Assembly (NCBI GenBank): GCA_051294905.1 | Contig: CM119374.1 | Location: forward strand, 16,120,001-16,184,000 | Reading direction: 5' to 3' | From: Botryllus schlosseri | Taxonomy: Eukaryota | DNA: 64,000 nt | In this document: positions 28,686 to 57,259 of the stretch, piece by piece | Layout: every line of letters starts with the position of its first letter | Numbering within the stretch: position 1 is the stretch's first letter | Notes under the pieces: generated by a model | The model's input: only the letters and a program-made list of their open reading frames with translations | The model's database searches: none | Told to the model about the DNA's origin: nothing | Made by a program: the position numbers and the translations under genes

Positions 28686-28877
28686 TCAGGCGTGGTTATA
28701 GCTGCAAACAACACCATATAATTTCGTGTCTGGTGATCTGTTTATCATCCCTTCGAACTGTTTTCCTTTCGTGTCCGTATACAGAGCTAGGTGGGTCGAG
28801 CTCTTTTCAGCCTTCGGATACTTCTCGTGTTGATACCATTTCAAATACATCTGCTCCGTCGCAATAGATTTTGTATT
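28686..28877 (-). CDS. CTLD gene I, terminal exon C1 (NTKSIATEQMYLKWY...GMINRSPDTKLYGVVCSYNHA*)
   Basis: Acceptor TATGATTCAG. Open frame conserved in paralog 49617-49808. Phase 0 matches exon B1. Terminal GVVC resembles a CTLD end. Confidence 0.8.
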   Translation of the reverse strand, partial: NTKSIATEQMYLKWYQHEKYPKAEKSSTHLALYTDTKGKQFEGMINRSPDTKLYGVVCSYNHA

Positions 28878-29439
28878 CTGAATCATATATTAGAGTTAGC
28901 GAATATCGACCTAAAAAGTCGTAATTATGAAGTCTGGTCTATTAACTGTTGTTTATACGTTGGCCTTTGACGAGGCTTCGCAAGGTGTAGGGGGCCACAA
29001 GCCATTTCCATGGAGGCCGTGAAAAGGACAATTAAAAGATTTCTCAAGTCTACTCGACTATAACAAAAGATATGAATTAACATTTATATAGCAATAAGCT
29101 ACTACTGGAGTTACATTCCCCCCTCAGCTGTTATTATCATTATCAGAGAAAACACAGGCTTCACCTTCTCGTTAACTGAATACATGGTAAATAAATAATG
29201 TACTGTCGTGTTTATTACGTGTTATATTTACATCATTTTATCATTCTAACTACCGATTACCTTTCTTAAATTATCCGGAGGGTTGAAATGACAAGGGGGC
29301 ATTGTTTTTTCGAAATATCAAGGATTTTTACTAAATAACAACGATTGTTAGATAATTGATTTTTCAGAGCAAAGACCGTAATACCACAATATCATCTATA
29401 ATACAACTGCACTGTCAAATCCGAAAAAAATGCTCTGTG

Positions 29440-29610
29440 CCCAGGATATTCATGCCCCTTAATGTTTAATCTCATACCCTTGGTGGGGAACCTTTTCTTT
29501 ACGTGGAACAGATGTCAGGGAGGAGCCTACATAAACCCCCAACACTTGGGAAGGAACCTATATGCGTTGCAGCATGTGGAAGGTAGCCTACCATTGCGCT
29601 GGATCGCCAA
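29440..29610 (-). mobile_element. Old SINE in intron of gene I; orthologous copy at 52400-52611 predates the duplication
   Basis: Shared position and sequence in both paralogs. B-box-like GGGTTCGAGTCC is visible in the 52.5 kb copy. Confidence 0.6.
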
Positions 29611-30577
29611 GCACGACTCAATGTCGCCGCAGCGCACTAGTGGTATAAATATTGTACGAGATGAGCAGGTAAGCCGAAATGAATAAAGATTTCATTCGTA
29701 TTAGTGATGGATTTATTTTCGGTATGAAAACATTTTGTGAGTAATGCGAAGTTTCAATACCAGTAGCTTCTGCAAAACTTGATTGTAAGCAGGAGTGACA
29801 AACGATAAAGTTATTTACATAAAATAATTCACCGCATTATTGTGTAGGATTGAAATATCGTGCACCAATAATCCTGCGCATTATTTTTTATTTTTTTTTA
29901 TTCACTATTATTTTTATGCCATGATTCATATAATAGTGAAATGGCTGGAAAGCCGAGTGGTGATTCAATAACAATGAGCCAAGTTGGGCGAGTACGTTTC
30001 GGATGCAGTTTCATATCTTGTATTCCTCACAACACTTACACATAGCGACAACGTCGCAACGTGGCTAACACAGTTGGAGCATAGAAACACACCAGCTTTT
30101 ATTAATATGACCATCCAGATAGAGCACTTGTTTTATTACTTTATATCAGTATTCAATCGGTCAATTATTGCATAATTATAAATTCACCCCATTATTGTTT
30201 ACGAATAAAAGTGTTGCTGGAATACAACCCGTGTAACCTGTAGCTTGATAACAAAGGATTCCATTGAAAAGAAAGATATGGATTTGAAGAAACAATTTGG
30301 CATCATTTGACTAGTTGGGTCTCCCGGCCAGCAAGATTTTCGAATCCGGCCCGCAACCGAAATGGAGTTTGACACCCCTAATTAGACCTTACTGGCACCC
30401 CGAAATGCCTTATTTATATACAATTATAGTGACATTTATACATACTTCGGACTTTTGATTTATCATGATTTTCGAATCCGGCCGGCTACCGACATTGAGT
30501 TTGACACTCCTAATTTGACCTAAGTGGCACCCCGAAATGTCATATTTATGTACAATTATAGTGATATTCATACATAC

Positions 30578-30828
30578 ATTGGCCATTGGATTTATGGTGC
30601 CGCTTATCCAGGCATTCGTATATATCACATCGGTCCCATGTCTCTTGCGGTGCGGCCGCAACATTCCCATGAGCAGATTATATTCCGCTATATTTTTGAC
30701 TTCTGCCACGGTTGAATTGTTCTCCTGGCATATACGATCTCCCGCATTGTACGTAATCATCAACTCGCCTGCCATCGATATCCAGAGGCATTCACTGGTG
30801 GAATCGTAACGGCACGCTTCGGGAACCT
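30578..30828 (-). CDS. CTLD gene I, exon B1 (EVPEACRYDSTSECLWIS...TYNAGDRICQENNSTVAEVKN...AWISGTINPMAN)
   Basis: Acceptor TTTTGCAG, donor GTATGT, 251 nt, phase 1/0. C-x7-C-x-W, helix-1 Cys and WIxG match the CTLD N-half. Paralog has the same length. Confidence 0.85.
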
Positions 30829-31214
30829 CTGCAAAATTTCAAATTCGATGACTCACACGCTCAGTCACACATGACGAAATGACCAAGTTCGTCCTAATAT
30901 ATAGACGCTGGGCCTGCTGCTATTACTAGTATAAATGCCCGATGTTGCGGTCAAAGTAACGCCCAATATATGGCATCCCCGCTGCTAACAAGAGATTTAT
31001 TATTGTTCGAAGTCTCAGTGGCAAATTGAGTCGAAAAGTTGTATATCGAAATGACGTCGGATTTCATAACTGGTATATCCTGAAAAAATAGTGTCAAATA
31101 ATGACAGCAATTGCACTTAATCTAAATCAATGTTTCAGGTCGCTTGTGATCCCGGATTTTGTTCAAATATTGATTAACTTTACTTTCCTCTTAATTTTAA
31201 AAGTACGTCTATAG

Positions 31215-32072
31215 CATGGGCAGGCAACATACGGCCCACGATGGGATTTTGTCCGGCCCGCGGACAGTTTTCCGTCTTGCATGATAATGTGACCCGCGTC
31301 CCCAGTCTGCCGAGACTCCCCACTACTTGCTTACTACCTCAAATTTTAGTGACTTTATGTTATTATATACGTGTATGAGCAGCGTTGCGAGAAAGGAGCT
31401 TACGTGGAAGTTCGTCGAAGCGAGAAGACTTGCATTATCGGCATTTCGATGCACTCAACCCTAATGTCGTTTGTGGTATTCATGATTTTTGTCGACCACA
31501 ATGGTCATATTTACACCAGGCTGATATTTCTTATTTTTGATTCCGTAACCGACGACTTGTAGCACGGCACACTTCTAGGCTTTTTGCACCGCATATGCCA
31601 GGGGTAGCCAACTCAAAACGGGTCGCAGGCCACCTTTCAAATCTCGTAGAGGACCCGGGCCGCATGACTTCAATATCGAGATTAATTTGGCCACACAGTT
31701 GAAGAACGACGCTATCCCGTCACCTGCTCAACCCTAATGAATTGATATCTTGGTAAATTAGGGTTACCGGGCTTATCGAACGCCTTGAAATCTTAATTAG
31801 GGATTGCAGCGTGTGTTAATTGATCAGATAGAAGCAGACATGGCGGCGCATGTATGAAAATGTTATTCTCAAATACACATTGTCTTCGCCATCAGGTGCG
31901 AGAATTGGCTTTGAAGTGACATTGCCATCGTTAAAATACATTCATTGAATACGATTTATTCCTGGTATATGTGGATAAATGTGCGAATAATGTATCGATT
32001 CAGCAATCCGGACTGCCAAGTACTCAATTTTCCTAAATCCGGCCCGCCGACTGGAGAAGTTGCCCGCCCCTT
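31215..32072. mobile_element. hAT-type MITE in intron of gene I, containing a 5'-truncated SINE-A insertion (~31468-31739)
   Basis: Exact TSD GTCTATAG. The insert is flanked by direct repeat CTCAACCCTAATG, which is single-copy in the homologous MITE at 55082-56523. Confidence 0.8.
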
Positions 32073-32815
32073 GTCTATAGAATAATATTGCTTAGCCATG
32101 CTTACATTTACAAATACTAGCAAACGTCAGAAGCAATATTGTATTGCATATAGTTTTAAATGCTAAGATAAATATGCTACATTAGAGAACTATAAGACTG
32201 TGAACTTAAAACTATATATGCCAAAAAATGATGCAAATCTGACAGTAACACATAATAAGAACAATGATGTTGTGTCCACGCCGGTAGTTGTTGGGATTTT
32301 GATACGACTGCATGCACGGTTATCGCGTTAAACGGCCTAAAGATGGCGGTGTTATGGTACCAATTGGGACTGAAGTATAAGGTAGGGAAGTCAAATTAAG
32401 TGCAAATTACAAATACATACATATTCAGAACTGCTACCAAATTATGGAAGCAATCATTATAGCTATACAATATTCAGTTCACGGGTACTCGAGTTGTTCC
32501 CTTCCCATCACGTGATAATATTTTAATAATAATACATCGATCAATTTCTGATGCAAGTATGGATCGACACCGACAATGTTATCCTTCTCGGGAGACTGGT
32601 GTAAAGGGTCGGGGTCGCACGCAAACCCGGTAGATCTACTTTGCGTATATAGGCATAACCGAGGGTGTAATAGTCAATTTCACGCTCCCCCTCCCCTAAA
32701 TATTGGTTTAACTCGGGCATGACATTGTGACGCTCTACTTTTTACAAAATAACAAGACATTCGTCATTGTCCACTGAGCGCTAGTGCAGGACGGACATGA
32801 CAAGTCAATATTTAC

Positions 32816-32905
32816 CTTTTCTAGTCGGAATATTTGTGGCATCAATGGATATAACGTTTTCCATACTTTTCATAGATGATGCAAACTTTTCGAAACCAAT
32901 TGGAC
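32816..32905 (-). CDS. CTLD gene I, stalk exon A1 (GPIGFEKFASSMKSMENVISIDATNIPTRK)
   Basis: Acceptor CTTCCAG, donor GTAAAT, 90 nt, phase 1/1. In frame with B1. Homologous to A2 and A3. Confidence 0.75.
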
Positions 32906-34019
32906 CTGGAAGTTATCAGTATTCAGAAAATTACGCCCCGGGTTCGCTTTTATCAATATCATGAGACTGACCCAAAGATATATGATATATAACACCACGG
33001 AGGTGAATTGCAGATTGACATAAAATAAACACATGCACACCACGACGCCCACAAATTACAAGTCGTTATCAATGCGTGGTATGGTGATAAACTGTCTATA
33101 AAAACACAAAGCAGTGGAAGATCATATAGAAAAACATTTGTTTTCTCCTAAATTCAACCCGTTCATCCGTTTGGTTTATATTGTACTTTCATCCAGATAT
33201 TGTGTTTCGTTACAATTTAGTTTGGTTTCAATCATTATTATATTATTTGTAATACAACGGTGATTATATGGTACATGACGAGTTACATTGCTAATGTGAA
33301 TTATGTGAAATGATGATTAACACTAGGTAGCCTGATTACCGAGGTTGTAGCCTGCGAACTATAAATGTGACGTCATTAATATAAAATCCCAGCCATAGCA
33401 AGGCTTTGTAGAGTTGTATACCATAGGAGCACACTGACCGACAGGCACTGGGCGGCATACCTGTGATACAAACCGACACAAAGCGAGGACTGGCGGCATT
33501 TCTAATGTATAAAGTATGCAAAATGATAAAACAAGGAATTGCTGAAACTTGAGCAACACAGAACAAACCTGATAAACGTGTAAATTGAAGTCGATGCGTT
33601 TCAAATCGCGTTGGCCAATCGCTGGAGTGACAGAATATGCTACTCGGGCATTTAGGATACGATCGTACAATGCTATTTATGTCGACTGGTCGTAATTTGA
33701 TGTAGCAACTATAGGCTAGATATGGATGTGTGGTTTCGGGAAGTCGAGCGCTATATTTGCTCTAATATAAGTTGCTGATATCTATTGAATCACTTGACGT
33801 TTACAGTCGCGACTGCTTTGGCTATAGGAGATGAATGTTTTTCATCGTGTTTATTCATTGACATGAACTCTGCAGTCTGCATGGACAATTCACTACTAAG
33901 TGTATGGGAGATATTCATACACTTGGGGGCGCCAAAAGCTCGTCCTAGTGATCCATTGTTTACATTGGATACCGAAAGAAACGTTGTCTTGATACGTTGT
34001 CTTTTGACATCCCTAGTGT

Positions 34020-34330
34020 AGCTGGTTGGAAGTCAATTGCCCCTACACGGTAAAGGATGACCTAATAACACCTGGAAAGTATTTTCCATATTTCACGATT
34101 GCTTCAGATGGCTATTATCTGAAGAAAAATCACAGATGGTATGCCCAAGTACAAGGCCAAATGGCTTGCGCTTGTATGAAACTATATGTTGTTTTATGTA
34201 TACATTTCGTAATGTGCACATGGAAAATATAGAGTTTGACCCATAATTTGTTCCTAAATTTATGATTCTGAAGCTGCAAAAGTTCTACGAAATGTATTGG
34301 CGTCCTTTTTTGGTGGTCAAGATTGCGACA
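34020..34330 (+). pseudogene. YqaJ/lambda-exonuclease-like gene fragment of the ISL2EU element
   Basis: EVNCPY...YLKKNHRWYAQVQGQMAC matches the EIKCPY...H.YY.QVQGQM motif. 5' part missing. Confidence 0.85.
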
Positions 34331-34739
34331 TCGCAAGACGAAAAACTGAAAACTGCTGCATGCAATGTAGCATTGATACAATTTTTTTGAGCAAAACCGT
34401 TCCTGCCGTTGTGGTGATTAATGATATTATCAAATTCCATGGATCTTTCTGTTGATTACGTAGTCTACCTATATATTGGGAGTTTTTATGTATCTCGTTT
34501 AGTAAATGAAAACAAAACTTGCGTCTAGTTAGTGATATGTTTTCTGTTCAGTCATCAAATCCAGTAGTGATATTCCGGTTTATTATGGCGGCATCTAATA
34601 TTGAAGTGGGATTAAGAAAATCCATTCAACACTAAGAGTAATCAATCATTATCACTAACCAAATCTGCTTCAGCAAACACAAAATAATAAAAGCATCAAA
34701 TGCTGTTATGTAGGACTATATCAAAGTATGTCTTTCCTA

Positions 34740-35997
34740 AATTTAAAAAGCGTAAAGCAGATAAAGACTATTTCATTTTTCAAATGCAAGAGTTTGTAAG
34801 GCAAGACATTTTGAATGTCTTTGCATAACCAATAACCCTTTCAACGTGTACATGTTTTGAAGAGATAATGTAATCCTCTACCCGCTGTTCCTGAGAGAGC
34901 CGAGTCATGCCTTTCATCAAAGTAGGGGTGTTGATTTTCACATCGAATGGTGCAAACAAACCTTGCAGTAGGTATCCTTCATCAGCCATGATGCTGTCGC
35001 CCTTTTCAAACATTACTCTGGCTTCAGCCAGCAAATCAGATTGCTCAATAATGCTGCTGCAGTCACTAACGGATCCACTATAGCAGTCACTTATGAAGGA
35101 GACAGCACCCGTGGGTGCAATGCCAACTACTACTTCCATAGTATTTCCATTCTTTCAAGTGGAGAATGTAACGGACTGTGCAGTGTGCATGGATATCAGA
35201 TGGCTTCTCAATTGGGATTTCTGTAGAGTCAATAATTATCTCGTTAAAGGATATAGTTTTTTAAATCATCTGGCATGGGATCCAATATTACTTGTTTTGA
35301 AGGCGAAATTAGTAATTTTGATAAGCAGTACATATGCTTGATCCAAGCAAGCATTAATGATGCGGGAAGCTGTTGATTCTGAAACAGTACCAAGCAGTTG
35401 ATGATCCAGAGCTTGATCAGTGTCAGAAAAACTTGCTCTTCATTTGAACACAACGTACAGGTGTACTCCAATAGATGAACATCGTACATTGCAATGTCCT
35501 TTAAAAGCAGAAACTGTTTGATGTCATCAAATCCAGTGAAGTACTGCACTGCTTTCTTATCATCCTTGATATTTTCTCAACTGAAAGCTGGCATTGAAGC
35601 TCCTAGTTGGCACTGAATGCCCATATTTTCCGAGTCTGTTTGAAATTTCTGGTCACTATGTGTTACGGAATGAATTATTTCAGTAGGTTCTGGTATACAG
35701 GGGTTCGAATTGTTTGTCTTCCTGACAGTTTTTAGTGGCGTTCTTTTATCATGCTGGAAGACTGATGGGACTGCCTCCTGTCTTTCAAGTTTCATGTTCG
35801 GCTCATATAATCACTTGAAAGAAAATGACCATAGCAAGCAATATGTCTCTGCCCAATGTCTCTGTCCAAAGCTGTTTCGTTTTGGAGTCTGATCTCCTAA
35901 TTGCTACTCTCCATTTCATCAGCTTCCCTGGTGGCGTAGGAATCAAATTACCACCAATCCGACTCGTGCAACCAGGTACACAGCAATATCGTGGCAT
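34740..35997 (-). pseudogene. Frameshifted THAP-domain plus DDE_Tnp_4 transposase
   Basis: MPRYCCVPGC...KW.AIRR, CYGHF in a shifted frame, AVPSVF, YFTGF, EEQVFLTLIKL, GIAPTGAVSFISDCYSGSVSD, GDSIMADEGY, HVERVIG. Confidence 0.92.
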
Positions 35998-36310
35998 TTT
36001 ATAATTTAGATATATGAAAATACAGACTATTAAAATGAAATATACATGTCACTCAGCTAATATTAAAACGCCACTCTCTGGAAATGAAATACCGATACAC
36101 GAAGTAACCTGGCAATTCATAAATTGCACTAAACTCAATCATCAGTCGTAAATATGTTTAAACGCCGTACATATAGAAGATTAATCCTGTTACCCAAATC
36201 CAACAGGCAGTGGCCGACCTGGTTTCTAGGGAATAAAGCTATAAGTTTTGTTTGCTTACTACGGACTAGGACGAGGTGTTGGCGCCCCTAGTGGTTTGTG
36301 AATGTCTCCC

Positions 36311-36367
36311 ATTCTGAGTGAGTGAGTCGAGGTTTAGGAATATAAAACACACGAGCATGCTGGCGTA
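36311..36367 (-). CDS. Putative signal-peptide exon of gene I, 5' part; the 3' part continues at 33903 beyond the ISL2EU insertion
   Basis: Acceptor CATTTACAG. Reads YASMLVCFIFLNLDSLTQN. The frame stays open after in-silico excision of the element. Confidence 0.45.
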
Positions 36368-36612
36368 CTGTAAATGAAGGTAGAAGTAAAAAGAAAGTAA
36401 AATCAACCAAACAAAAGAATAGTACTGCACATATACTATTTGTCGTTTACGGATTCATCAAACGTATGTAAAACGTAATATGCAACATACATATAAGGAT
36501 TTACACTTTCATGCGTTGCGGACAAGGATGCAAATGCAGTCATCCACGTGTGCTTCAACGAATGCTGCTGATACTGCAAATAATGTCTCAAATTAAGAAG
36601 CTATTTACTCAC

Positions 36613-36622
36613 CATCGAAGCT
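36613..36622 (-). CDS. Putative 10-nt microexon ending in ATG (paralog 61751-61760)
   Basis: CTTTGCAG|AGCTTCGATG|GTGAGTA is identical in both duplicated copies while the flanks have diverged. Confidence 0.45.
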
Positions 36623-38555
36623 CTGCAAAGAAACAAATATTTTATGCCAGAAGACTGTGTGATAATATGTTGTGAATATTTATCGTTCAGTTACTTCCTT
36701 ACCCCTTGTTGATAACAAAGAGCTTGATTCTTCAGATTCCCATTGACATATACAGTAAAAAGATATGCTACACAACCGACCCTGTCGCTACAAAAACTTC
36801 AGAATAGTATAGTCCTTTAGAACCAAGTGAGAGTATTGTATCAGATGGAAGTATGGTATGCGAGTATCGTTATGTGCAAGAGCAAGTGTGTTATGCAGAG
36901 CGAAATATCAAGTATGGTATTGAGATGGCCAGGAACGAAACATCTGGTTTTTCGGCCGAAGAATTTTTTCCTGCCTTTACCGCTAATTCTACTTCTACAT
37001 CGCCATATTTTGTAACTTAGTTTTTGATGCTCTTTATCGCTCCTTGTCTTATTAACTACGGACCTTGTCATCCGAGGGGGCGCCATTTTCTGAACGCGGC
37101 TTAAGGGTGACAAAATTATTAAGAAATGCCGCTGCACTATGGATATTCTTAGCATCGTGATATTTCGTAGTTTCATTACGCCCCAAATACCTACACGCCC
37201 GGCATTCCGTGTGTCTAGAAAAGGTTTCAGCTTCATCACGGCAAAAGTAATAGAAAGTATGGAATATGTATTAAATGCGCCAGATATGGCTGAAGCAATC
37301 TACTCAAGCAGCAAGCAGCAGTAGAAGTTCTGCCAAAAACTTTCACTTATTTATAAGTGGAAGTGCGGCTTCGATAATCTGTACTTCACCTGTCTCTTCG
37401 CAGTATTTCTGTACAATAAATATGCAAATTCCGTAATGTTGGGTGCACAAATGTTCCATATCAGTCATTCATCAACATCAGTACAAAATAACAATATTCA
37501 TTTAAGGTTTCACAATTTTACGTATTCTGACCACAGGTGAGACGCTGCCTCACTTGCATTCTTGGGCGCACCTAATTGTTAGCGGGCTCATGATCGATTT
37601 GCGATGTAGGCAGACTGCGACATTATATTGCACATAAAGTGCTCTTGATAAAAATACATAAAACATGCATGTTTTTTTCTCACAATGGTCATCTCGACAG
37701 TTCGCACACACGCTACTATAGCAACACCCTTGACATTCTATGTCAAAAAGGCATTTTCTTTAGCACGGCAAAAGTGATAGAAAGTATGTAATGTGTATCA
37801 AATGCGCCAGCGGTAGTTGAAGCAGACAGTATCGCCACTCAAATAGAAGTATAAACATTGCCGAAATTTCAACTCAATTGTAAGTAGAAGTGAGGCTTGA
37901 CTCCTCGGCTCCTCAACTGTCCTCGAGCTATTTCTGAACAGTAAATATGCAAATTACGTGATTTTGGGCGCAGAAATGTCCCAAATCAGTCATTCATGAA
38001 CACCAGTAAAATATAACAATAGTTATTGAAGGTTTCACAATTTTCTTTTATTTGTTCTGACACCAAGTGAGACGCTGAGACTCACTTGCCTCCCTCGACC
38101 GCACCTCCCTGTTAGTAGGCATATATCAAATTTGTGGTAGGCAGACTGCGACATTGTATTACGCATATTGTTCTCTTCGTTCATAAAAATATAACAGGCA
38201 TGTCTGTACTCACAATGGTCATCTCGACACACGTACCGGCAGTAGACATTTCGTCTGTAAATATAGGACATCCCGTTATATGCAGTCATCATGTTTACAT
38301 TTATACATACACTGATAGTCCAAATAAACGAATTGGTTCAAAATCAACGGTATATTATAGCAGTCATAGTGTGAAGAATCACCAAGACCATATCACCCTC
38401 GGATCGTTTGACTCATAGTTGCTTTTAATTCACGTGAAACGTAGCAGTCCAATATTACAGAGGTGGTCAAAGTAGTCAAGAAAGTTACTCAAGTAGAAGT
38501 GGAAGTAGCGACACAAAAATCTGCTCAAGGACGAGTAGAGGTACTCCCTTCAGAA

Positions 38556-42057: not shown

Positions 42058-42085
42058 TGTCAACAATAACAACAACAACAGCAGC

Positions 42086-42119
<34 letters not shown>

Positions 42120-42141
42120 GCAACAAAAACAACAACAGCAA
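42058..42141. repeat. (AAC)n microsatellite
   Basis: Visible directly. It explains the poly-L, poly-T and poly-N ORFs at 41974-42361. Confidence 0.95.
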
Positions 42142-44054
42142 CGTCGACCGGCTGGCACCGTCCCCGTACCAGAGGTTGCGGGCCACTGCACTCCTAATTT
42201 TTCAAAAAACTAATTCACGAAGACTATATATCGAATCATTAAGACTGGGTCATTTAGAAGCAATGAGAATATCACCTGCTCCTTCGCTTTTGATGCATGC
42301 AATAAATACAGCTGCAATAAACCATGACAAAAGTTTCGTCGAGGGAGTATTCATGTTTTAAAGTAACCTAAAAGACTGTAAAACAGTACGCATATCATCG
42401 AGTAGCCAACCAACAGGCTCGAATAGAATCGCAGCTTTAAAATCTGGTGAACGCGTACATTATGAGTAGGCTATATCTTATGTGTCATAGAAGCAAATGG
42501 ATAAGCCAGTACATTGAATACGGAAATGGTCTCTCGATGTTGCCATCCTAGTTATTTTATATTTGCGAGGACTCCGACCGAAATGTCATGACTTACATTG
42601 ATTTACATTGTGTTTTATTTCCGTAGAACACTATCGACTATCACAATATAGTGTTGAATCTATTATATTTCCATCTTCAGAGCTGGTTGCGAGCCAATAA
42701 AAAACTGACTCGTGAAACGCAGTTGTCCACGGTAAGTGGTGTTAACAACTCGGATGTATGGCACCTATCCAAGTGTCGTGAACTGAAATCACTTGTCCTA
42801 CGACTAATCTTGGTAAAACAATAAAATGATCTTTCCCTTGGTGCTTCTCGAGCTTACGTTTAAAGCTTGCTGCCTGATAGATATATTTGCAGAATGGTTT
42901 ACATAGTCGTATGGATGAGCTATCCTTGCCGATCGCTTTGTTTCCACTCATGAATAGACTCGAGTACAATTACAACTGCTGACAGTAGAAATCCATATTT
43001 ACTTCCTTGCGACAGCAGGCATATCCGTGATTATGTTCCGAAGCGTACTATTAGCCAAATTTCGCGTCTCTGTGGCAATAATGTGGATGAGTTCCTTATT
43101 TAGTGTTCGCGATTCGTTAGGAAACTGAAGTGCCGACACATGTGTTATTATTTGTTAGTTGCTGAAACCCGTTCCACTGCACAGCATATCGTTAATTCTC
43201 AGTCCTAGTAGTTAATAATCGCCGCAATTGAGCCGCGACAGCTTGCCAACCTATTAGTTTCATTTGGCCGTTTATGTTTCACAATGAGCAGACGATGGGC
43301 CGTTTACAACGGTATGCCGATAAATTGGGCTACAATAAGCAATAAAATATCAATGATAAGTTCACTCACAGTGCAAAGATCTACGATATAAACGAAATGC
43401 AGGTTGCAAAAAAATTATGACTTCGTAAACATTTGTGACATTTTTTGACCTAACGCTACGTTTTTGACCAAATTTTGTGTCAAAAATGTCAAAGATAAAT
43501 CGCCCTACTGATGAGTCACGAATTACGTTTTTTATGGTCGTCGCCCAGAATGCTCACGTACTCTCCGATTTGAAAATGTTCCATAACACATTCTTATTTA
43601 TAGTCACTTCAATATTGACTTCAGTCAGTGGCCGAGAATGCTTGCTCACAACTAATAACTAGGGATGGTGCGAACCTCTGAAAGTTTCTAGTTCATCTGA
43701 ACGCGAACCTTTTTGAAAGCTTCTGTGTAAACGCCAACGTGAACCTTTGACGTCACGTGACGTCATATTGTTAATGAGAATCCTAATCTTCGTAAAGTGA
43801 TATATTATTGTACAATGTGTATGATGACTAGCGACGACTCACCAAATTATGCAACTATGCTCAAGTAAATGATGACTTTTAAACGACACCTAATGTGTAC
43901 ACTGGAACAATCAAATTCCACAAATTCAATATTATCCGTCCCTTTGCCAACAATTTCGACGAGTACTCAGATTGACCGGCCCTAGGCATTCTTGAGAGTA
44001 CAACATCGGTTTCTATACTTGCACCAAATATTATTTCAGAAATAGGTTACACAC

Positions 44055-44710: not shown

Positions 44711-44716
44711 TAACAC

Positions 44717-45097
44717 TAGGCTTACCATACGTCCTCTTTTAAGAGGATTTGTCCTCTTTTTTGACTTTTTTGAAAGTGTCCTCGGAGGACGCCCTTTTGT
44801 CCTCTTTTTTGAGATTTTGTCCTCTTTTTTGAAAATTTAGGTCAGATTTAGAAGAAATTGCGAGTGATATGCCGCAAATTAGTGCAGAAGTGAAGCTCCG
44901 GCGGGTATTTCGGAGGGAAAAGCGGTGATTTCAGCTCCGAGCGAAAAGAAGACCTTTTTTTTTTTTTTTTTTTTTTTGTCAACCGATCATGAAGTGGGAA
45001 AAATTTACCGGTTTTTGAGAATTCTTCTCCAGTTTTGCATGTCTGAAATTTCTGAAAAAGTGTCCTCTTTTTTCATTTCCGAAATATGGTAAGCCTA
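44717..45097. mobile_element. hAT-type MITE, TAGG..ACCATA/GTCCTC-repeat family
   Basis: TIR TAGGCTTACCATA...TATGGTAAGCCTA. Exact TSD TGTAACAC. Confidence 0.92.
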
Positions 45098-46830: not shown

Positions 46831-46892
46831 GTTCAAAGCCAATGCCAGGATGGACATTAAATTGATTTTATTTTGCTTGTTAGTGTTGCTAT

Positions 46893-48205
46893 CAGGGCTT
46901 TGGAGCCGGAGCCGGAGCCCGGAGCCGGAGCCCCGGAGCCGTGCATTTTCACCGGAGCTGGAGCCGGAGCCGGAGCTCTACATAAAATTCAGCCGGAGCC
47001 GGAGCCGGAGCTGGAGCCCGTTATTTGAGGAGTAGCTCCGGCTCCGACCTATTTCATAAGATGCTATTATATATGCAACAAACACATCTGCTGATTCATC
47101 ATAATTGAACAGCAGGCCTGAATTTTAATGCTGTGCGCAGCAATGGCATAGAGTAAAGTGCGTTCTAATGCAGCTATGATGTTGTCGACAATTGACAAGT
47201 ATACATTATCACGTCACAAGCCGGCACGGCGGCACCTAGTCTATATGTCTTCGTTGCTACATCGGATGTTACTGACGGCTGACAGACTCTAGACTACTAT
47301 TATAACTAACCTATGGGTAGATTTGTAATCTATATAGACCAGGAATGGTCAACCTTTTCGGCTAAAGGGGCACATGCAATTGACGAACGAGTGCGCGGTC
47401 CACTAGTCGCGCCAAGCGGGTAAAATTTTCAAAGTTTATAAATAAACTAGGTCAATATTATTATTACTTGAGTATATTGCGGGTCTATATTGTATACCGC
47501 CCGCTAGGCTCAGTTTGCAAAGACACGACTATTCGGCGTCTGGCCACATCGATATCGAAGGTCTCCGATAATATGCGACAATCATTTTGGGCCTACATTT
47601 CACCGTCGACTATGTTTATGCGAGCGTAAACGCGAAAAGACTTTCTCCCGTAATTGCGAATACAGTTAGACTCAATCAGGTAAATTAGGCGTTTATTTCA
47701 TTTTCAGTAGGGGCCAGGGGGTAGGCTACCAAGCAAGAAATCGTGTGACAATTAAATACGCGAAGCGTGAAGAAAAATTTCGCTACTATTTTAGTTTATT
47801 GTAATATACGACGATTTACTGAAAATGTGACCGGACCCTGGATCTGCCAATGCGTCGGAACTGATATTTTAGTCATCAACATCCCAAGTGTCGCAGCCAG
47901 AATTGTAATTTTTGGTTTGCATTGCATTGCAAGTCCACAATCTTAGCAATTCATTTTCGATAATATAATAGGAAATTACCTCGCGGGTCACGCAAAACCC
48001 TCTCGCGGGCCACATTTGCCCCGCGGGTTGGCCACCCCTGATATAGACAGACCCATTCGATAATTTCAGAGCCGGAGCCGGAGCTGGAGCCGGAGCAGTT
48101 GTAATAATGCGGCTCCGGAGCTGGAGCCGGAGCCACTGTATGATTGAAGAACGCTCCGGAGCCGGAGCTGGAGCAGTTTAAATTTACGGCTGCTCCAAAG
48201 CCCTG
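46893..48205. mobile_element. hAT-type MITE with subterminal (CCGGAG)n arrays
   Basis: TIR CAGGGCTTTGGAGC...GCTCCAAAGCCCTG. Exact TSD GTTGCTAT. Confidence 0.93.
47340..48040. mobile_element. hAT-type MITE, innermost of a triple nest
   Basis: Ends CAGGAATGGTCAAC and GTTGGCCACCCCTG. Exact TSD ATATAGAC. Confidence 0.88.
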
Positions 48206-49616
48206 GTTGCTATTCGTTGGTACGTGCTTTCATGCTTTATAATTTTTGTTTTACCTAATGAGTGTGTTCCTGCGCCTCCAAACGTACTCTGAAATTTGAA
48301 ATGCGGCCGCGAAACCGTAAAAGGTTGGGAACTACTGGCGTAGCGTTTGTAACCTGCATGTCATTTTGATGATAACCCTCGGATTATCCTTGATCGAGGA
48401 TAATCCGCGATTTATCAACGAAAAACTCACATAACTCCGCTTCCACTGGTCAGAATTGACTAAAATTTGTTTTGCAACGTCTTTGAAGACAGCTCAAATT
48501 TCATGGGGTTGGCAAAAAAAATTGGAATTTTTTTTCAATTTTTCATAATAAACTAAAAATTTTAATTGGATCTGCGGAGTCCTATACTAGTTAGAATTGA
48601 ACCAAATTTGGTGTGCAGCGTCTTTTAGTGTAACCTGACAATTTAATCAGTGAATGGCTGTAATACTAAAAAAAAATATTTTTGAATAGCCCTAATGAGC
48701 AGTCTCTCAACAGTCACGCTGAAACTACACGTTGAGATTGAAAACATTCTGGTTGCTTTGGATTTGACGATAAAATATTCATTATCACCAAGGAAGGCTT
48801 GTCTAAACGCTGTTCCATGTTCTTCTGAATGTAAACTGAAACTGGTCTCGGATCTGCTGACCCATCCATTTCTTCAACAGTCCTCCGTTTCTTGCTAAAT
48901 GCTGAGGTGTTAATTCTTTTTATTACTGTCCCATTCCCCCCCACCCATCGCTTTGCTGAAGTTCATTGGTACTTCTCGCTTCGAAATAGATTTATGACTA
49001 TAGATACGTTTTGTTCCCATTGTGCCCCACCTTCTCCTACACAGGGGATGAGGGCTTCAAAAAGAGCTCAGACTCTTCGAAACGTATTGTATTACATTAT
49101 ATTTTAATCCATGTATGTTTAAACTAAATGATCGGGTCGCAATCTGGAGGTTTAGACCAGCAGGTATGTGCTATAACAAATACTGTACGTACATGTTATA
49201 CATCTGAATCGCCCTATTTTGCTCCAGAAAAACATCATGCATATGCAAAATAAAACTATCACCTTGAAATAATAAATATCAAAAATATCATAAAAATAAA
49301 GGACAACGCGATATATAAACTAATGTTACAAAAATTATAGTTTTATTCGGAAGAATTTTAGAAACACTAACAAATCCGATTTTGAAAATGTATTCGGGGT
49401 ATTCGAATCCTTCAATAAATTCTTCAGCAAATTCCTGGATGTATCAAGTCTTTTGTAATATCCATGGCTAAATTCAGCTGGGGACATAAATACAGACATC
49501 ACCGTCTTCGGGCATCAACAACCGCGCAATGACGAGCAAACGAGAAAAGGATTCAATCAATTTTACGTTTTGTATCATAAGGTTAGCTATCTCTTTTTTA
49601 ATACCCATTGCTACAT

Positions 49617-49808
49617 TCAGGCGTAGTTACAGCTGCAAACAACACCATATAATAATGTGTCTGAGGATCTGTTTATCATCCCTTCGAAGTCTTTTCCTTT
49701 GGTGTCCGTATATAGAGCTAGGTGGGTCCAGCCCTTTGTCTTTTTCGGATGTTGTCCGTCTGGATACCATTTCAAATACATCTGCTCCGTCGTAGTATAT
49801 TCTGAGTT
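49617..49808 (-). CDS. CTLD gene II, terminal exon C2 (NSEYTTTEQMYLKWY...GMINRSSDTLLYGVVCSCNYA*)
   Basis: Same acceptor, length and stop position as C1. Open frame. Confidence 0.8.
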   Translation of the reverse strand, partial: NSEYTTTEQMYLKWYPDGQHPKKTKGWTHLALYTDTKGKDFEGMINRSSDTLLYGVVCSCNYA

Positions 49809-52800
49809 CTGAATCATATATTAGAGTGAGCGAATATCGACTTGAAGAATTCGTACGAAATGTATTAACATTTATATAGCAATGAGCTACTTCTAGAGAA
49901 ATCATTCGGATGGTTGAAATAGTAAGGGGGCATTGATTCTTCAAACTTTTTAAAGGGGGTAACGATGAAAAAATGTTGGTAACCCCTCGTATATAGTAGG
50001 CCTACGTATAGTTTTCCGCTGCATAGATTACATTTAGCGCGATCTCCAGGTCCAGCGAACTTGGCGAACGAGTTTAACATGTGATGCGCGACAGCCCATA
50101 TATTAGGCCTCAAAAAGTAAGAACTGCCAGTACACAAACGAATCAAATTCAAATGTGAAAATATAGAGGACGTAAGTAAGTAATGAAGTCTATTCGCGAC
50201 GAATTATTATAGTTCTACATAGGATTTGGTTACAATACAGAGGGGTTTATCTCGAATTTACAGAGTGCAAATGCAATATTGCTTACAAACCCTCAGAGTC
50301 AAACTTTGATTTATAATTTCTTTATGTTTGAGTTACAGTTGCTATACTGACATTCACGATACGCAATGTATGTATCCGCGAAATTAGGGCATAAATAATG
50401 TCGGCGCTTGGCACAGCGTTCTCAAAGCAGGACGCGTGAAAGCATCAGAAGGGGAGGGCAAGCTGCGGTATACTGAAGATATTTTTGCGCTTCCCGCGAT
50501 TTACCTACAATTCATAGTTATTGCTCCGTGCATAGTCCGAATTTCAGATTTGAGAATTCTCTTATCAACTGTCATTACCTTCCATGCCATCAAAGTATAC
50601 GTTGGCATTACCAGCATTCTGGGTGCCCTTTGTAATATGACGATAATTGGGCACGATATTTCGGACTATTATAAAATGGGTCGTGTCTAAAAAATTGAGA
50701 ACCACTGGCTTAGAAGGTAGTTTTGTTTTTTGGTGTTCAGTGTGTTTTCAACTGAAATGGTCATTGACACCAGGCCGATATTTTTGCTAGGATTCGGTAT
50801 GTATTGGTCGGGAATTACGCTAGGGCTTCCCATCCTTTTTTAATTGCTCGTACCAGTTTGTCATGTCAGAGCATTATTTGTACCCCCTAAATAAATCTCA
50901 TTGATTTTTTCAGATAAAATTATGTATTATATTTCACACACGCAAAAAAGAAAAATCACAAAAAGTAAATGAAATGTCAGTTATTTCATTAGTCCCTTCT
51001 CAGTGATATATTGGTTTCTGCTTCATTGATAACATTCGTTTCCAATCGCAGATATTTGTAAACTAATTTTTGATATATATTATAGTAAGATACCCTTATT
51101 CACAGTAAGAAGATGTTAAGAAGGGAATTCACTCAGTCATCGAGTAAGTAAGGAAGGCTTTTATAGCAACACACCAAAAATCTTTTAATTTTGATTTGAA
51201 GAGCTTCTTGGGCGTAAATAACTTAAATATACAATTGAATAGTATATTCATATTGAAATGAACCCGAAGGCGGGGAGGGGCCGTTCGCACTTTTATTTGT
51301 GTGCCTTGGAGTCGACTTTTATCAAATGACACCACCTAAAAATAGTACATTGAGCGCTCTGTCATTCGAAATTTCATGCTCATGACGTCATATTTTGTGA
51401 TACGATTGTTGATATATGATGTTCTTTCCAATTCTCTTCTAGTTACTGACGATTACCCCTGACGAGTGTCAGCCGAAAATATTAGGGTTCATTTCAATAT
51501 GAATATACCATTCAATTATGACTTGTCAAACTGATGTTTCAATTTTAGGCAGCTTTCCAAGTCGATGGGCTTTTCCTGCTAATTAACTTTTTCAGATGTT
51601 TCTGTTGAATCAAAACGGAATGGATTTGTAATTCAAAGCTGCATATCATTCAATTCACCACAAGAAAAGTAGCTATCGGAAGAATCAACCACATCATATT
51701 TAAACGAGGAATAGTTTCATAACTTTATTTTGCAGCAAAGAGTTATTGGAAATCTAATCAAGATATGCACTTTTGTCACATTTATTAGTTGACATGAAGC
51801 GATCGGTTTGGCTCGTTTAGAATGTTTACGATTTCGTCACTTTCAAGTGAGGTAACCAGATTAGAATTTCGATGTTGTCAATACAACTCAAAATTTTAAA
51901 AAAATCGTAACATCACTCGACCTCAAGGGAGCCACCTTACATCAGTGTGATACAGCAAAATGTGGACAAAAACACAAACAAGCATTGTGTCTGATATTAA
52001 TGACTATTCGAACACATTTGTCGAACAGATCCTTCAAACTTTACGGCAGACGCTTTGAGACTTCTAGTGTTGGTGCAGAAAGAATTGCTATGATCTAATC
52101 ATAGCGTGCAACAGTGGAGCTTATTTACGTATATTATACGTGTACGTTCGTCAACACGCGGAAGTTAGTCTGATCCTTCTATTTATTTGAATTTGGATTT
52201 GAAAAAATATCAAACCATTCGTATTTTTCATCTGGCTATGCGTCTGGCTGGAAGCAAGTAAAAATGCATTGATATGAGACAAGGAGGATTTTTACTAAAT
52301 AGCAACGATTGTCAGATAGTTGATTTTTCAAAGCAAAGACCGTAATATCATAATATCACCTATAATACAACTGTACTTTCAAATCCGAAAAAACTGCTCT
52401 GTGCCCAGGATCGTCATACCCCTTGATGGTTAATCTCATACCTCCGGTTAGGAACCCTTTCTTTACGTGGACCAGATGTCAAGGAGGAGCCTACATAAAC
52501 CCCCAACACTTTGGAAATAATGTTGTAGTCGACCGCGATCGGACTCGAACCCGCAACCTATTTGTGTTGCAACATGTTGAAAGTAGCCTATCATTGCGCT
52601 GGATCGCCATGCACGACTCAATGTCGCGACAACGCAGCTGCGGCATAAATAATGTACGAGATGAGCAGGTAAGCCGAAATGAATGAAGATTTCATTTGGA
52701 TTAGTGATGTATTTCTTTTCGTTATGAATACATTTTGTAGTGAGTAATGCGAAGTTTCAATACCAGTAGATTCTGCAAACTTGGTTCTAAGCAGGAGTGA

Positions 52801-53431
52801 CGAACGATAAAGGTATTTTCACAAAATAATTATGCGCATTACTGTCCAGGATTCAAATATCGTGCACCAATAAACCTACGCAATATTTTTTTTTGATTTT
52901 TGTGCCGCGATTCATATAATCGTGAAATGAGTGAAAAACCGAGTGGTGATTCAATAACAATGAGCCAGGTTCGGAGAGTATGTTGTCGATGCAGTTTCAT
53001 ATCTTGTACTCCTCACAACACTCACACATAGAGACAACGCCACAACGCGACTAACACGGTGGGAGCATAGAAGCACACCAGCTTATATAAATATGACCAT
53101 CCGGATAGAGCACCTGTTTTATTACTCTATATCAACATTCAATCGGCTAATTATTGCATATATGTAAATTCCTTCTATTATTGTTTACGAATAAAAGTGT
53201 TGCTGGAATACAACGCGTCTAACCAGTACCTTGATAACGAAGGATCCCACTAAAAACAAAGGTATGGATTTGGAAAAAACAACTTGGCATCATTTGACTA
53301 GTTGTACCCCAGGCCATCAAGATTTTCGAATCCGGCCCGCAACCGAAATGGAGTTTGACACCCCTAATTAGACCTAACTGGCACCCCGAAATGTCTTATT
53401 TATATACAATTATAATGACATTTATACATAC

Positions 53432-53682
53432 TTTGGCCATTGGATTTATGGTGCCGCTTATCCACGCGTTCGTGAATGTCACATTGTTTGCATCTGTCTT
53501 GCGGTGCGGCTCCAACATTCCTATGAGCAGATTATATTCCGCTGTATTTTTGACTTCTGCCACCGTTGAAGTGTTTTCCTGGCATATCTGTTCACCCTCA
53601 TCGTACGTCATAGTTCTCTCGTCTCTCATCGATATCCAGAGGCATTCACTGGTGGAATCGTAACGGCACGCTCTGCAAACCG
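53432..53682 (-). CDS. CTLD gene II, exon B2 (AVCRACRYDSTSECLWIS...TYDEGEQICQENTSTVAEVKN...AWISGTINPMAK)
   Basis: 251 nt, canonical splice sites, open frame. Confidence 0.85.
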
Positions 53683-54729
53683 CTGCAAAATTTCAAATTC
53701 GAAAGTAAAAAATACAAAAAATCCCTATTTTTATCATAAATTTGCTGTAAGTTTACCGTGACGTTATGTACCTCTTGACATGGTAGACCTATGACTAGAA
53801 ACTTTCAACATAGCACAGGTCTGAATCTCAGCTTTTCAAAAAACCTTGAGTGACGCATTTACGACAAATATTTCAAACAAATTTTTGGTTTGCCGTGATG
53901 CAACGTAACAAAATTTTACAATTGAGAAAACGACTATCAAACACTTGAAACGTAAAAAGTCAATGTACAAGTGTTACCGATGTAATGATAAGAATGAGTG
54001 CCAGAATGTTAGAATGCCAACTGACAACAATCAAACACATTTGTACCCAGAGATAATATAGATAGATATATTTTGTAACTGTCAAACCATATAGTTTATA
54101 GAGTCATTGGACAAAACATGCGAGCTTTTGGTTGGAACTTGAAAATAAAAAAAAAACAATTATCAAAGGAAAAAAATCGAAATTTTGCAGTTTTTAGGTA
54201 TTATTTGGGTGAAAATGGACATGAGGTGACAGCAGAGATACAATGTTAATATTTCTTACCAGAAATAAAATCAAAAATTTTGATTTTTGTTGGTTGCTAG
54301 TCCCCTCAAGAGGGCTGTGTTACGGTACCAAGAGTCTGAAGTAAAGTCGGGAAGTCCAGATAGGTGCGAATTACAGATGTATACATATTCAGAACTGCTG
54401 CCAAATTATGGAAACAATTAATATAGCAATACAAAATGCAGTTCACGGTTACTAGAGTTGTTGCCTCCCCATCACGTGATATTATTTTCATAATAACACA
54501 TCGTTCAATTTCCGTAGCACGTATGGATCTAGTGATTCTATCTATTCACTCTCGGGAGACTGGTATAAATTGTCGGAGTCAAAGGCGAACCTGGAAGATC
54601 TACAGGCATAACCGAGGGATGCAATAGGTGAATTAGTTTACTTTCTGGCATTGTGACGTTATGTTTTTCATTAAATCACATGAGAACCGTCATTGTCCAC
54701 TGAGCACTAGTGCAGGACTCAGTATTTAC

Positions 54730-54882
54730 CTTCTGTTGTTGGAATATTTGTGGTTGTTGCCTCAGTTTTTGTTGTGACGTCATGTGCCGTGGAAGGGGTT
54801 GTATTATCCTGCGAGGTATCAATCGAGATAGGATTTGTCCTACTTTTCGTAGATGCTTCAAAATTTTCGGAACCCATTTCAC
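54730..54882 (-). CDS. CTLD gene II, Thr-rich stalk exon A2
   Basis: 153 nt, phase 1/1, acceptor CTTCTAG, donor GTAAAT. Reads GEMGSENFEAST...TTKTEATTTNIPTTE. Confidence 0.75.
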
Positions 54883-55081
54883 CTAGAAGTTATCAGCATT
54901 CAGTATATTACGCCCCGCGTTTACTCTCATCAATATGATGAGACAGCCGCAGAGACACAAGACATTTAACGAGAAGAATGTGAATTGCAGAATGCAGAAT
55001 GAAACAAAAATAAAGGAAATACATGCACACCTCGCTACCTCCAAATCACAGGTCAATATCAATGCGTTGTATAGTGTATAG

Positions 55082-56523
55082 CAGGGGGGCAACATACGGC
55101 TCGCGCACAGTTTCTCGTCTTACATGATAATGTGACCCGCAGCCCCACTCTGCCGAGATCCTCCAATACTTGCTTAACGTCAAATTTTAGTGACTGTATG
55201 CAAGACCGTAACTGCCGCACCACAAACCCCCGAATTGGGGGAGCTGAGCTCGAAGGAGGTCAAAATTAGGTCGCGAATTTAAAAGAATTATGAAGTATTT
55301 CTTTAGAGAATTATGCATTTATCAAATTTTTTTTGCGCTGGGTGCGATTTATTGTTGGCAATTACCCTCAATATTGGGTTCCGTTCCCCCAATAAAAATA
55401 CGCATGATTTATAGAAGCGGACACTTTGGCGTCGGCCATTACCGCGCCACGACGCACCAAGACATATGATGATATAGTCCATGCTGTAACATGCGATTCC
55501 GAGAAGTGTGCCAGAACGACCAGCAGCGAGAAGACCTTGGCCGAAAAGGACTGCCCTTGTGCTGACCGAAAACTTCGATATAAATATACAATTATAGCTA
55601 CATGTTTAAATGTCCATTGGCGCCTAAATGGCTGGCGCCGAATGTTCCTGTCCTGGCGCTCTGAACCCCACAAGACAAATGCCATACAGCAGGGAAAAAT
55701 TATTAGCCAGTAAAGAAAAAGCAATTGAAATCGTGTGCGTCATTTAGATGAGTAAGTTTGGGCCATTTCAATATCTTTCGACATAGCAGATAGGAGGTCA
55801 CGAAATACCATCATGTAACGAAATCATTATACCAACGGGTCCGCCCGGAGATGTTTGATTATTATTTGGGGCCCTACATTTTTCAAGACACTCAGCTCTA
55901 TTACCGGTAAATATGAGTACGTGAATAGAGAGCGGATAAAAATGATAGCAATATATATGCAACTCCCGATCATATTGACCGATTCAATCATGAAGTATAA
56001 CAATTTTTGCGCGCTTCGCTCGTTTAGCGTTTAGGGGGACCCAATATCAACGTTTTTCGGGAAAGGACTGACGAAGTGCTGTTACGTTCCTGGCGATATG
56101 TTATTATATAGCCTACGTGTGTGCGCAGCGTACGAGAGTATAGAGCTTACGCGTAAGTTCGTCGAAGCGAGAAGACTTGCATTATCGGCATTTGCACTGT
56201 ACTCAACCCTAATGAATTGATATCTTGGTAAATTTAGGGTACCGGGCTTATCGAACGCCTTGAAATCTTAATCAAAGGATTGCACCCTGTTTTAATTGAT
56301 CAGAGACAAGTAGACATGGAGGCGCTGGTATGACAATGCTGTTCTCAAACCCCCATTGTGTTCGTCATTATCGGTTAGAAATGGCTTTGAAGTGACATTG
56401 CTTTCGTTTAAACACGATTTATTCCTTGTATATGTGGATAATGTATCAATTCAGCAATCCGGTCCGCCCAGTACCTAATTTTCCCATATCCGGCCCGCCG
56501 ACTTGAGAAGTTGCCCGCCCTTG
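55082..56523. mobile_element. hAT-type MITE (family of 31215-32072) with a further internal insertion (~55200-56140)
   Basis: TSD GTGTATAG/GTGTAAAG. Shares internal sequence with the 31215 copy. Confidence 0.78.
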
Positions 56524-56837
56524 GTGTAAAGGGATATAGTGATAGAACGGGCAATAACAATACAGCAAGCGCTGCACCTATGGACTTGGACACCTACATT
56601 ATTATCTTTCCCGGGAGACTGGAGAAGCGGTTGGAGTCACACGCGTACTTGAAAGATCTACTATGCGCATATAGACATAAACGAGTGATGAAATGAGTCA
56701 CTTCACCCTCCCCCTCAGCCAAATATGGTTTATAGCTCTGGCATGACATTGTGACGCTATATTTTTTTTCTAAATCACAAGAGATTCGTCATTGTCCAGT
56801 GAGCTCTAGTGAAGTTCAGGCATGATGTATTTACCTT

Positions 56838-57098
56838 GTTGTTGTTGTTGTTGTTCAATATTCATGGTGTTTCAACCACATTGGTCATTTTACAGGCTTA
56901 TAGGCTTTATTTGATTCCGTATTTGCCAACTGGTAGCGCTGCCCACTTCTAGACTTTTCAAGACACCGTTTACGAGGTCACGTCGCAGGAAGCAGCCTAG
57001 ATGAGCCTCCAACACTTAGAGTCGCACTCGCTAGGACCCGAACCCGCAAGCCATTGGTGTTGCATTTGTGGTACGTACCACTACGCTATATCGCCTTA
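56838..57098 (-). mobile_element. Full-length tRNA-derived SINE (family A) with (AAC)n tail
   Basis: A box TAGCGTAGTGG, B box GGGTTCGGGTCC. Exact 11-bp TSD GTATTTACCTT at 56827-56837 and 57099-57109. Confidence 0.9.
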
Positions 57099-57106
57099 GT
57101 ATTTAC

Positions 57107-57259
57107 CTTCTGTTGTCGGAATATTTGTGGTTGTTGCGGAAGCTGTTGTAGTGACGTCATATGCCGTTGAAAGGGTCAAATCATCATGATAGGCATCAAT
57201 GGAAATAACATTTCTCATACTTTTCAGAGATGCTTCAAACTTTTCGAAACCCCTTTCAC
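57107..57259 (-). CDS. CTLD gene II, duplicated Thr-rich stalk exon A3
   Basis: 153 nt, phase 1/1, canonical splice sites. Reads GERGFEKFEASLKS...TTTASATTTNIPTTE. Confidence 0.7.

Follow-up and report, generated by a model that had tools for sequence, protein, structure and literature searches.

On a chromosome of the sea squirt Botryllus schlosseri (GenBank assembly GCA_051294905.1, contig CM119374.1), a stretch of 64,000 nucleotides (nt) carries two similar series of short coding blocks on the minus strand, and it raises the question of whether these blocks are real genes, what kind of protein they would encode and how they came to differ from each other. The whole stretch is called here the window (G000:C4:16120001-16184000, where C4 is the window's own contig). 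A preliminary description, made from the sequence alone, had taken the blocks for a tandem pair of spliced, fast-diversifying genes for proteins with a C-type-lectin-like domain (CTLD). The analysis points, with a probability of about 0.78, to two intact paralogous genes of six or seven exons each, which would encode small secreted CTLD proteins and which belong to a same-strand tandem array of the sea-squirt genome. Genome-wide searches covered the 495.5-Mb genome, and the paralogs used for comparison are loci fetched from the same genome (labelled L0xx, with p16xxx for array members; L024 holds p16084). Literature searches returned no paper on the gene family of the window pair.

Gene structure, splicing and array

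All exon coordinates are window positions of minus-strand exons, taken directly from the sequence. The two genes have the same exon phases (1/1 in the stalk, 1/0 in exon B, 0/stop in exon C) and equal exons B (251 nt) and C (192 nt), as had been proposed and as is confirmed by reading the exons. Every junction in both copies is flanked by AG and GT, in keeping with the canonical GT-AG splice sites claimed earlier, and the chained exons are open over six to seven exons. In copy 1 the chain measures 663 nt and encodes 220 amino acids; in copy 2 the open reading frame (ORF) persists with either stalk exon or with both (735 or 888 nt, i.e. 244 or 295 amino acids). This structure is not due to chance, because 23 exon-B and 23 exon-C paralogs share the exon boundaries and the chains are open over their whole length. 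In the predicted order, the signal-peptide exon comes first, then X and a micro-exon of 10 nt; one or two stalk exons precede B and C. The three conserved exon types 5′ of the stalk, namely the signal-peptide exon, exon X (41-50 nt) and the micro-exon, were found by comparison with paralogs. The extent previously assigned to the genes lacked them and has to be enlarged, for copy 1 by those at 36.6, 38.2 and 42.3 kb, and for copy 2 by those at 61.75 and 62.35 kb and by a further one past the window end.

In copy 1, exon E1 (42276..42367), placed on the basis of homologous exons, has a 13-nt leader after a ttttag acceptor, an ATG at 42354, a 26-amino-acid signal peptide MNTPSTKLLSWFIAAVFIACIKSEGA and the donor G/GTGATA in phase 1. 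Exon Xb (38214..38254), which is kept across paralogs, passes from phase 1 to 0 between the acceptor tttacag and the donor GTGAGT and encodes ...CVEMTI. The micro-exon (36613..36622; 10 nt, AGCTTCGATG) passes from phase 0 to 1, reads S-F-D and has a strong acceptor and a GTGAGT donor. It is followed by the stalk exon (32816..32905; 90 nt, phase 1/1), by exon B (30578..30828; 251 nt, phase 1/0), which encodes the predicted first half of the CTLD with the hairpin cysteines, beta1, alpha1, alpha2 and the WISG strand, and by exon C (28686..28877; 192 nt including the stop, phase 0/stop), which encodes the second half. A duplicated X-like block, the candidate exon Xa (37684..37737), would be in frame (phase 0/0) if included; the matching block in L024 has a 2-nt deletion, which makes the coding status of Xa uncertain.

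Copy 2 begins with an exon 1.6 kb past the window end (L061:1583-1661), which encodes the signal peptide MINSSMQVLSWFIAAVFVVCIKSAGA. Exon X (62336..62385) passes from phase 1 to 0 and encodes ...ACERTVEMTI, and the micro-exon (61751..61760) has the same 10 nt (AGCTTCGATG) as that of copy 1. Two stalk exons of 153 nt and phase 1/1 come next, the Thr-rich 2b (57107..57259) and its internal duplicate 2a (54730..54882), before exon B (53432..53682; 251 nt, phase 1/0) and exon C (49617..49808; 192 nt including the stop, phase 0/stop), which would again supply the first and the second half of the CTLD.

The exons 5′ of the stalk are conserved well beyond the pair. Five close and three distant paralogs have a recognisable signal-peptide exon, and homologs of E1 occur in copy 2 (outside the window), p16213, p16193, p16084 and the distant loci L027, L029 and L038. 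Exon X encodes ...C(E/V)RTVEMTI, and among copies with canonical splice sites its two indels (+15 nt and -9 nt) are both multiples of 3. The micro-exon is the most conserved piece of the locus: together with its flanks it is the same or almost the same in both window copies and in L024, L026, L027, L029, L030 and L034, and its 19-nt core is identical in seven of these eight loci and differs by one substitution in the eighth, even though paralogs with less than 70% identity in exon B are included. The ATG of the micro-exon was considered as a start codon and rejected, since it would put the following exon out of phase; the reading S-F-D, by contrast, suits both neighbouring exons. A hydrophobic ORF at 36266-36430 was likewise discarded as a signal exon; its frame and acceptor are unconserved in copy 2 and L024.

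For the RNA evidence, reads were placed on the copy 1 region from run X1 (public Logan contigs, taken to be RNA) and from three bulk RNA-seq runs, each sampled at 6-13%. Two X1 contigs join position 28877 to position 30578 and skip 1700 nt, with CT..AC on the plus strand and GT..AG on the gene strand. The joined ends coincide exactly with the predicted B-C intron of copy 1, whose donor (30578) and acceptor (28877) are those used in the contigs, and the statement that the genes are spliced is borne out in this way for copy 1. X1 coverage includes exon C, the B-C junction, a repeat (31.25-32.24 kb) of the intron between stalk exon and exon B, the segment 32882-33096 over the 5′ end of the stalk exon, and traces elsewhere. 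The run behaves like a transcriptome, because most unique intron bins are empty while exon C and the junction are covered. The intron repeat itself (31250-32240), a transcribed mobile element of high copy number, reaches an X1 contig depth of 250-440, and many RNA reads fit it only in part and have loose ends.

The region next to the stalk exons bears on a different type of protein, namely type II membrane receptors of the kind of natural killer (NK) cell receptors and CD94, in which a hydrophobic ORF directly 5′ of each stalk exon would be the membrane anchor. Hydrophobic ORFs of 46-70 codons do adjoin the stalk exons (32906-33052, 54886-55095 and 57260-57397), one X1 contig runs unbroken over 32882-33096, and two of the relatives in Styela clava described below, P0029 and P0032, have an N-terminal anchor. 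However, the hydrophobic ORF is out of frame with the stalk and preceded by a stop, is missing 5′ of the stalk exon in distant paralogs, carries frame-breaking indels in L026 and L034, and has lost its acceptor in copy 1. These segments were therefore rejected as anchors and are regarded as intronic. The conserved 26-amino-acid signal-peptide exon, in fitting phase, completes the ORF without the hydrophobic segment; the window gene models have a signal peptide at the N-terminus, and neither an NK-receptor-like cytoplasmic tail nor a membrane anchor was found in them. Membrane receptors are accordingly a very improbable reading of the two genes.

The pair is not isolated. The two copies lie within a segmental duplication of the window (about 27.0-42.0 kb against 49.0-63.6 kb, 72-86% identity in the self-comparison), and the paralog count proposed in the preliminary description gives 23 exon-B and 23 exon-C matches in the genome, with conserved exon boundaries. 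Twenty of each are on contig C4, all of those on the minus strand. The exon-B matches of C4 are distributed as 17 at 15.46-16.25 Mb and three at 17.5-17.65 Mb, and a few copies lie on C16, C7 and C10. The window pair therefore sits in a same-strand tandem array of about 20 genes, with at least 18 copies. Both copies are real, intact, spliced minus-strand genes, so that the earlier tandem pair stands as regards the genes themselves and not as regards its being a pair, since they are members of a larger array.

Domain encoded by exons B and C

The assignment of the protein fold begins with weak signals. Lectin_C, the Pfam model PF00059, scores 14.8 and 16.8 bits on the single exons B of the window, against a gathering threshold of 22.6 bits, and gives no match on exon C; the genome-wide PF00059 scan has no window exon among its matches, and a search for homologous proteins with the 142-amino-acid open frame around exon B found none. 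A profile of 21 exon-B peptides matches only CTLD chains in the PDB (PLA2R, DEC-205, CLEC10A, CD93 and E-selectin), and the full-domain profile likewise matches only CTLD chains there. Full-length relatives were found in Styela clava by exhaustive protein search; four of them score 22.9-37.1 bits with Lectin_C, and another three score 18-22 bits. A local hidden Markov model of the spliced B+C peptides (142 positions) aligns to contiguous Styela clava domains from position 1 to 140, across the exon junction. The AlphaFold2 model of one relative (P0016:192-340) has a predicted local distance difference test (pLDDT) value of 93.7, and in a Foldseek search with this model every PDB match listed is a CTLD, among them mannose receptor carbohydrate-recognition domain 4 (CRD4), CD23, CD93 and LOX-1, with probability 1.0 and template modelling scores (TM-scores) of 0.53-0.76.

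The window peptides themselves were examined by a split-domain test, in which the exon-B and exon-C peptides of copy 2 were given as separate chains to a complex predictor. They reach an interaction prediction score from aligned errors (ipSAE) of 0.78 against 0.02 for the best control, with agreement of the runs in at least 85% of contacts and a partner pLDDT of at least 72; the mark set for this test is reached by 51 of 78 solved complexes and by 2 of 108 mismatched pairs. In the predicted complex, Cys33 of B contacts Cys58 of C with an expected error of 0.5 Å, which corresponds to the canonical alpha1-beta5 disulphide (C1-C4). The model supports, and does not prove, that the B and C halves form one domain. 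The double-loop alpha/beta fold of CTLDs is thus predicted both by the model of the relative and by the co-folding of the window exon peptides as two chains, and the C-type-lectin-like character claimed earlier is upheld by the profile matches, the Styela model, Foldseek and the co-folding.

The conserved residues are in agreement with this fold. The exon-B cysteine of the alpha1-beta5 pair occurs in 20 of 21 exon-B peptides, and both cysteines are found in all 17 of the 17 paired paralogs. A WIGL-type strand and the long-form N-terminal hairpin are present, with an invariant W in AWI.G and a conserved hairpin motif C..(4-9)..C.W. The second disulphide (from C2 in beta3 to C3 after beta4) is absent: its aligned positions (T-H-L-A-L and G-M-I-N-R-S-P-D) contain no cysteine, and none of the paralogs or Styela relatives has one there. 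This disulphide is missing from some accepted CTLDs, too. The motifs of calcium site 2 are missing as well: the EPN/QPD position reads YPK or HPK, and the WND position reads GMIN. Because of the missing C2 and C3 cysteines, YPK/HPK in place of EPN/QPD and GM.N in place of WND, the family is classed, from its sequence, as a CTLD family and not as calcium-dependent lectins.

These same positions bear on whether the genes might encode classical calcium-dependent, carbohydrate-binding C-type lectins acting as pattern-recognition molecules. Many invertebrate CTLD expansions consist of lectins of this type, and the predicted CTLD fold and the secretion suggested by the signal peptide would suit this role. 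On the contrary, YPK and HPK at the EPN/QPD position, GMIN at the WND position, the replacement of the beta3 cysteine and its partner, and the lack of a conserved acidic calcium-ligand set in the family alignment all argue against it, which makes classical lectins quite unlikely.

Rate of change and mosaic history

The ratio of nonsynonymous to synonymous substitution rates (dN/dS, Nei-Gojobori) between copy 1 and copy 2 is 0.72 in exon B, 0.64 in exon C and 0.68 overall, with a dS of about 0.23, and between close copies the overall values range from 0.5 to 0.75. Variable and conserved columns were defined from the 14 other paralogs only. Between copies 1 and 2, dN/dS is 1.02 at the variable and 0.29 at the conserved columns, and amino-acid differences occupy 33 of 76 variable columns against 7 of 66 conserved ones (Fisher p = 1.3e-5). 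On the model of the relative, predicted loops show a modest excess of differences (28 of 76 positions, compared with 14 of 70 for helices and strands; p = 0.03). The loop peptides quoted in the preliminary description are present in the sequence, and its observation that the differences concentrate in the loops agrees with both comparisons, clearly by columns and modestly by predicted loops. By these sequence measures both copies are constrained like working genes, because dN/dS is 0.29 at conserved columns and the differences are concentrated at variable ones, while half of the domain is free to change. The description of the pair as fast-diversifying is right as to speed, and positive selection does not follow from it, since dN/dS at the variable columns is about 1.0 and not greater than 1 in the comparison of copy 1 with copy 2.

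This pattern has to be set against the possibility that one or both copies are unexpressed or decaying pseudogenes, whose open frames would be remnants of a recent duplication. The array is indeed a birth-and-death array with decaying members. An in-frame stop interrupts the signal-peptide exon of p16084 (L024:8263-8340, C4 ~16092962-16093039), which has intact exons B and C and is probably a young pseudogene; p16019 has no in-phase exon-C acceptor, and two exon-B copies carry stops. The overall dN/dS of 0.68, an exon divergence (about 14-20%) close to the intron divergence (about 16%), and the near absence of reads in the three RNA-seq runs would suit decay too. Yet a dS of about 0.23 represents time enough for frame breaks, and six to seven exons with all their splice sites are intact in both copies; moreover, changes avoid the core residues (p = 1.3e-5), with the low dN/dS at conserved columns noted above, and a spliced B-C contig exists for copy 1. 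Decay of either copy is on this evidence unlikely.

Several other points weigh against the reading of two intact genes for secreted CTLD proteins. The RNA status of X1 is a guess, and its contigs differ by 3-7% from the reference, because of which they may come from another allele or from an unassembled near-copy. The copy 1 exons attract almost no reads in the three bulk runs, and expression of copy 1 in those samples is very low. The splicing of copy 2 and all junctions 5′ of B are argued from phase, splice sites and conservation, Lectin_C stays under its threshold on isolated window exons, and secretion, glycosylation, ligand binding and calcium independence are read from the sequence only.

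A further aspect of the array is that exons B and C do not share one history. Copy 1 and p16084 are separated by a dS of 0.028 in exon C and 0.185 in exon B, and copy 2 and p16115 by 0.055 in exon C and 0.52 in exon B. The trees of the two exons conflict, and approximately unbiased (AU) tests reject the clade of the other exon with p = 0.015 and 0.0004. In a sliding window, the 3′ half of exon B of p16084 is nearer to copy 2 than to copy 1, which is the reverse of its flanks. Since the exon trees conflict and dS differs by exon, gene conversion or unequal exchange among array members is the simplest reading of these sequences. In the neighbour p16115 (C4:16107113-16115457, just before the window), exons B and C are separated by about 8 kb. 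Neither a stalk or signal-peptide exon (peptide search) nor a micro-exon (pattern search) was found over the 10 kb upstream of p16115, including the first 5.2 kb of the window, and p16115 may be a partial gene.

Such exchange invites a stronger interpretation, in which the family would be a diversifying, polymorphic, soluble recognition system (e.g. for microbes, gametes or non-self tissue) shaped by shuffling of exons B and C through gene conversion and by positive selection on four loop segments. A system of this kind is unlikely. If the variable loops turned out to bind ligands and to be polymorphic, the array would be a tractable system for studying recognition diversity in the invertebrates most closely related to vertebrates.

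Predicted proteins, related families and repeats

Under the preferred reading of two genes for small secreted CTLD proteins, a cleavable signal peptide would lead to secretion. It would be followed by a short, acidic, Thr-rich linker, which is probably O-glycosylated and has one conserved cysteine, and by one long-form CTLD from exons B and C. This domain would keep the WI.G core, the cysteines of the N-terminal hairpin and the disulphide between alpha1 and beta5, and it would have lost the other conserved disulphide together with the calcium-sugar motifs EPN/WND; a CTLD fold with a single core disulphide is supported by the models. The conserved odd cysteine of exon X might allow dimerisation. 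The products may be soluble binding proteins whose variable loops recognise ligands without using the canonical calcium site. They might serve immunity, reproduction or tissue recognition, of which the preliminary description had put forward innate immunity or allorecognition. Their diversification could have proceeded by tandem duplication, relaxed or diversifying change in the loops, exon duplication, and gene conversion between neighbours.

The closest known proteins are those of Styela clava, where RefSeq entries XP_039256040, XP_039256068, XP_039256053, XP_077974709 and XP_077966168, among others, match the domain end to end with 23-33% identity. They share with the window genes the hairpin pair and the alpha1-beta5 cysteines as the only ones, the WI.G strand and the C-terminal motif QGM.N...GVVC. 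Their architecture includes a coiled-coil neck, two to four tandem domains or an N-terminal anchor, whereas in the window genes a signal peptide and a Thr-rich linker precede a single domain, and the genes form part of a dense tandem array. These relatives are likewise unstudied. All named relatives come from this ascidian and are called "uncharacterized protein", save two with automatic "X-like" labels, and the view of an uncharacterised family is therefore correct; a complete gene model and a predicted fold are now available for a family labelled only "uncharacterized" in the one related annotated genome.

Among vertebrate proteins, mannose receptor CRD4, CD23, the CTLDs of PLA2R and DEC-205, CD93, LOX-1 and the type II antifreeze proteins share the long-form CTLD, the alpha1-beta5 disulphide and the N-terminal hairpin. 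The window family differs from them by its N-terminal parts, by an identity of 14-21%, and by the lack of the second conserved disulphide and of EPN/QPD and WND. Lineage-specific CTLD expansions of invertebrates, such as those of bivalves (PMC10140915) and nematodes (PMC9085898), are also tandem, fast-evolving and secreted, with variable loops. The window family belongs to another subfamily, known to date from stolidobranch-type sea squirts only, and differs from those expansions by an unusual exon structure with a conserved 10-nt micro-exon.

As it stands, the array is a typical lineage-specific CTLD expansion. It is an undescribed yet ordinary kind of expansion, with fast-evolving small proteins of divergent fold whose secretion is predicted from the signal peptide. 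On this sea-squirt chromosome lies a dense, recombining array of lectin-fold genes for predicted secreted proteins. Its points of interest are the conserved micro-exon of 10 nt, the fact that the second disulphide and the calcium site have been lost, and the mosaic make-up at exon level.

Some minor features accompany the genes. Three distant paralogs share a block 5′ of the signal exon (L029:6633-6687, L030:7445-7499 and L027:3618-3671), with 98-100% identity between two of them and 83% in the third. It contains an acceptor, the mini-ORF MWRTRGIPC and then a GTGAGT donor, behind which lie paired palindromes resembling TGACGTCA. The block may represent either a promoter element or a leader exon; the mini-ORF was not found in the window and is outside the gene model. 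Comparison of the upstream regions by tblastx gave mostly repeats.

The introns contain repeats of their own. In the first intron of copy 1, just 3′ of the signal exon, a long trinucleotide microsatellite (42060-42190) would translate to poly-Leu, poly-Asn or poly-Thr in its different frames. A DNA transposon (about 33896-36320) occupies part of the copy 1 intron that separates micro-exon and stalk exon. It has a DDE_Tnp_4 ORF (65 bits) together with a weak THAP ORF on the minus strand. In L024, the closest paralog, this transposon is absent and the intron is uninterrupted. A short dispersed repeat resembling a miniature inverted-repeat transposable element (MITE) is present at 44717-44915 and 61034-61232 and also in L025 and L035, and one of its copies lies in copy 2 roughly where copy 1 has the transposon.

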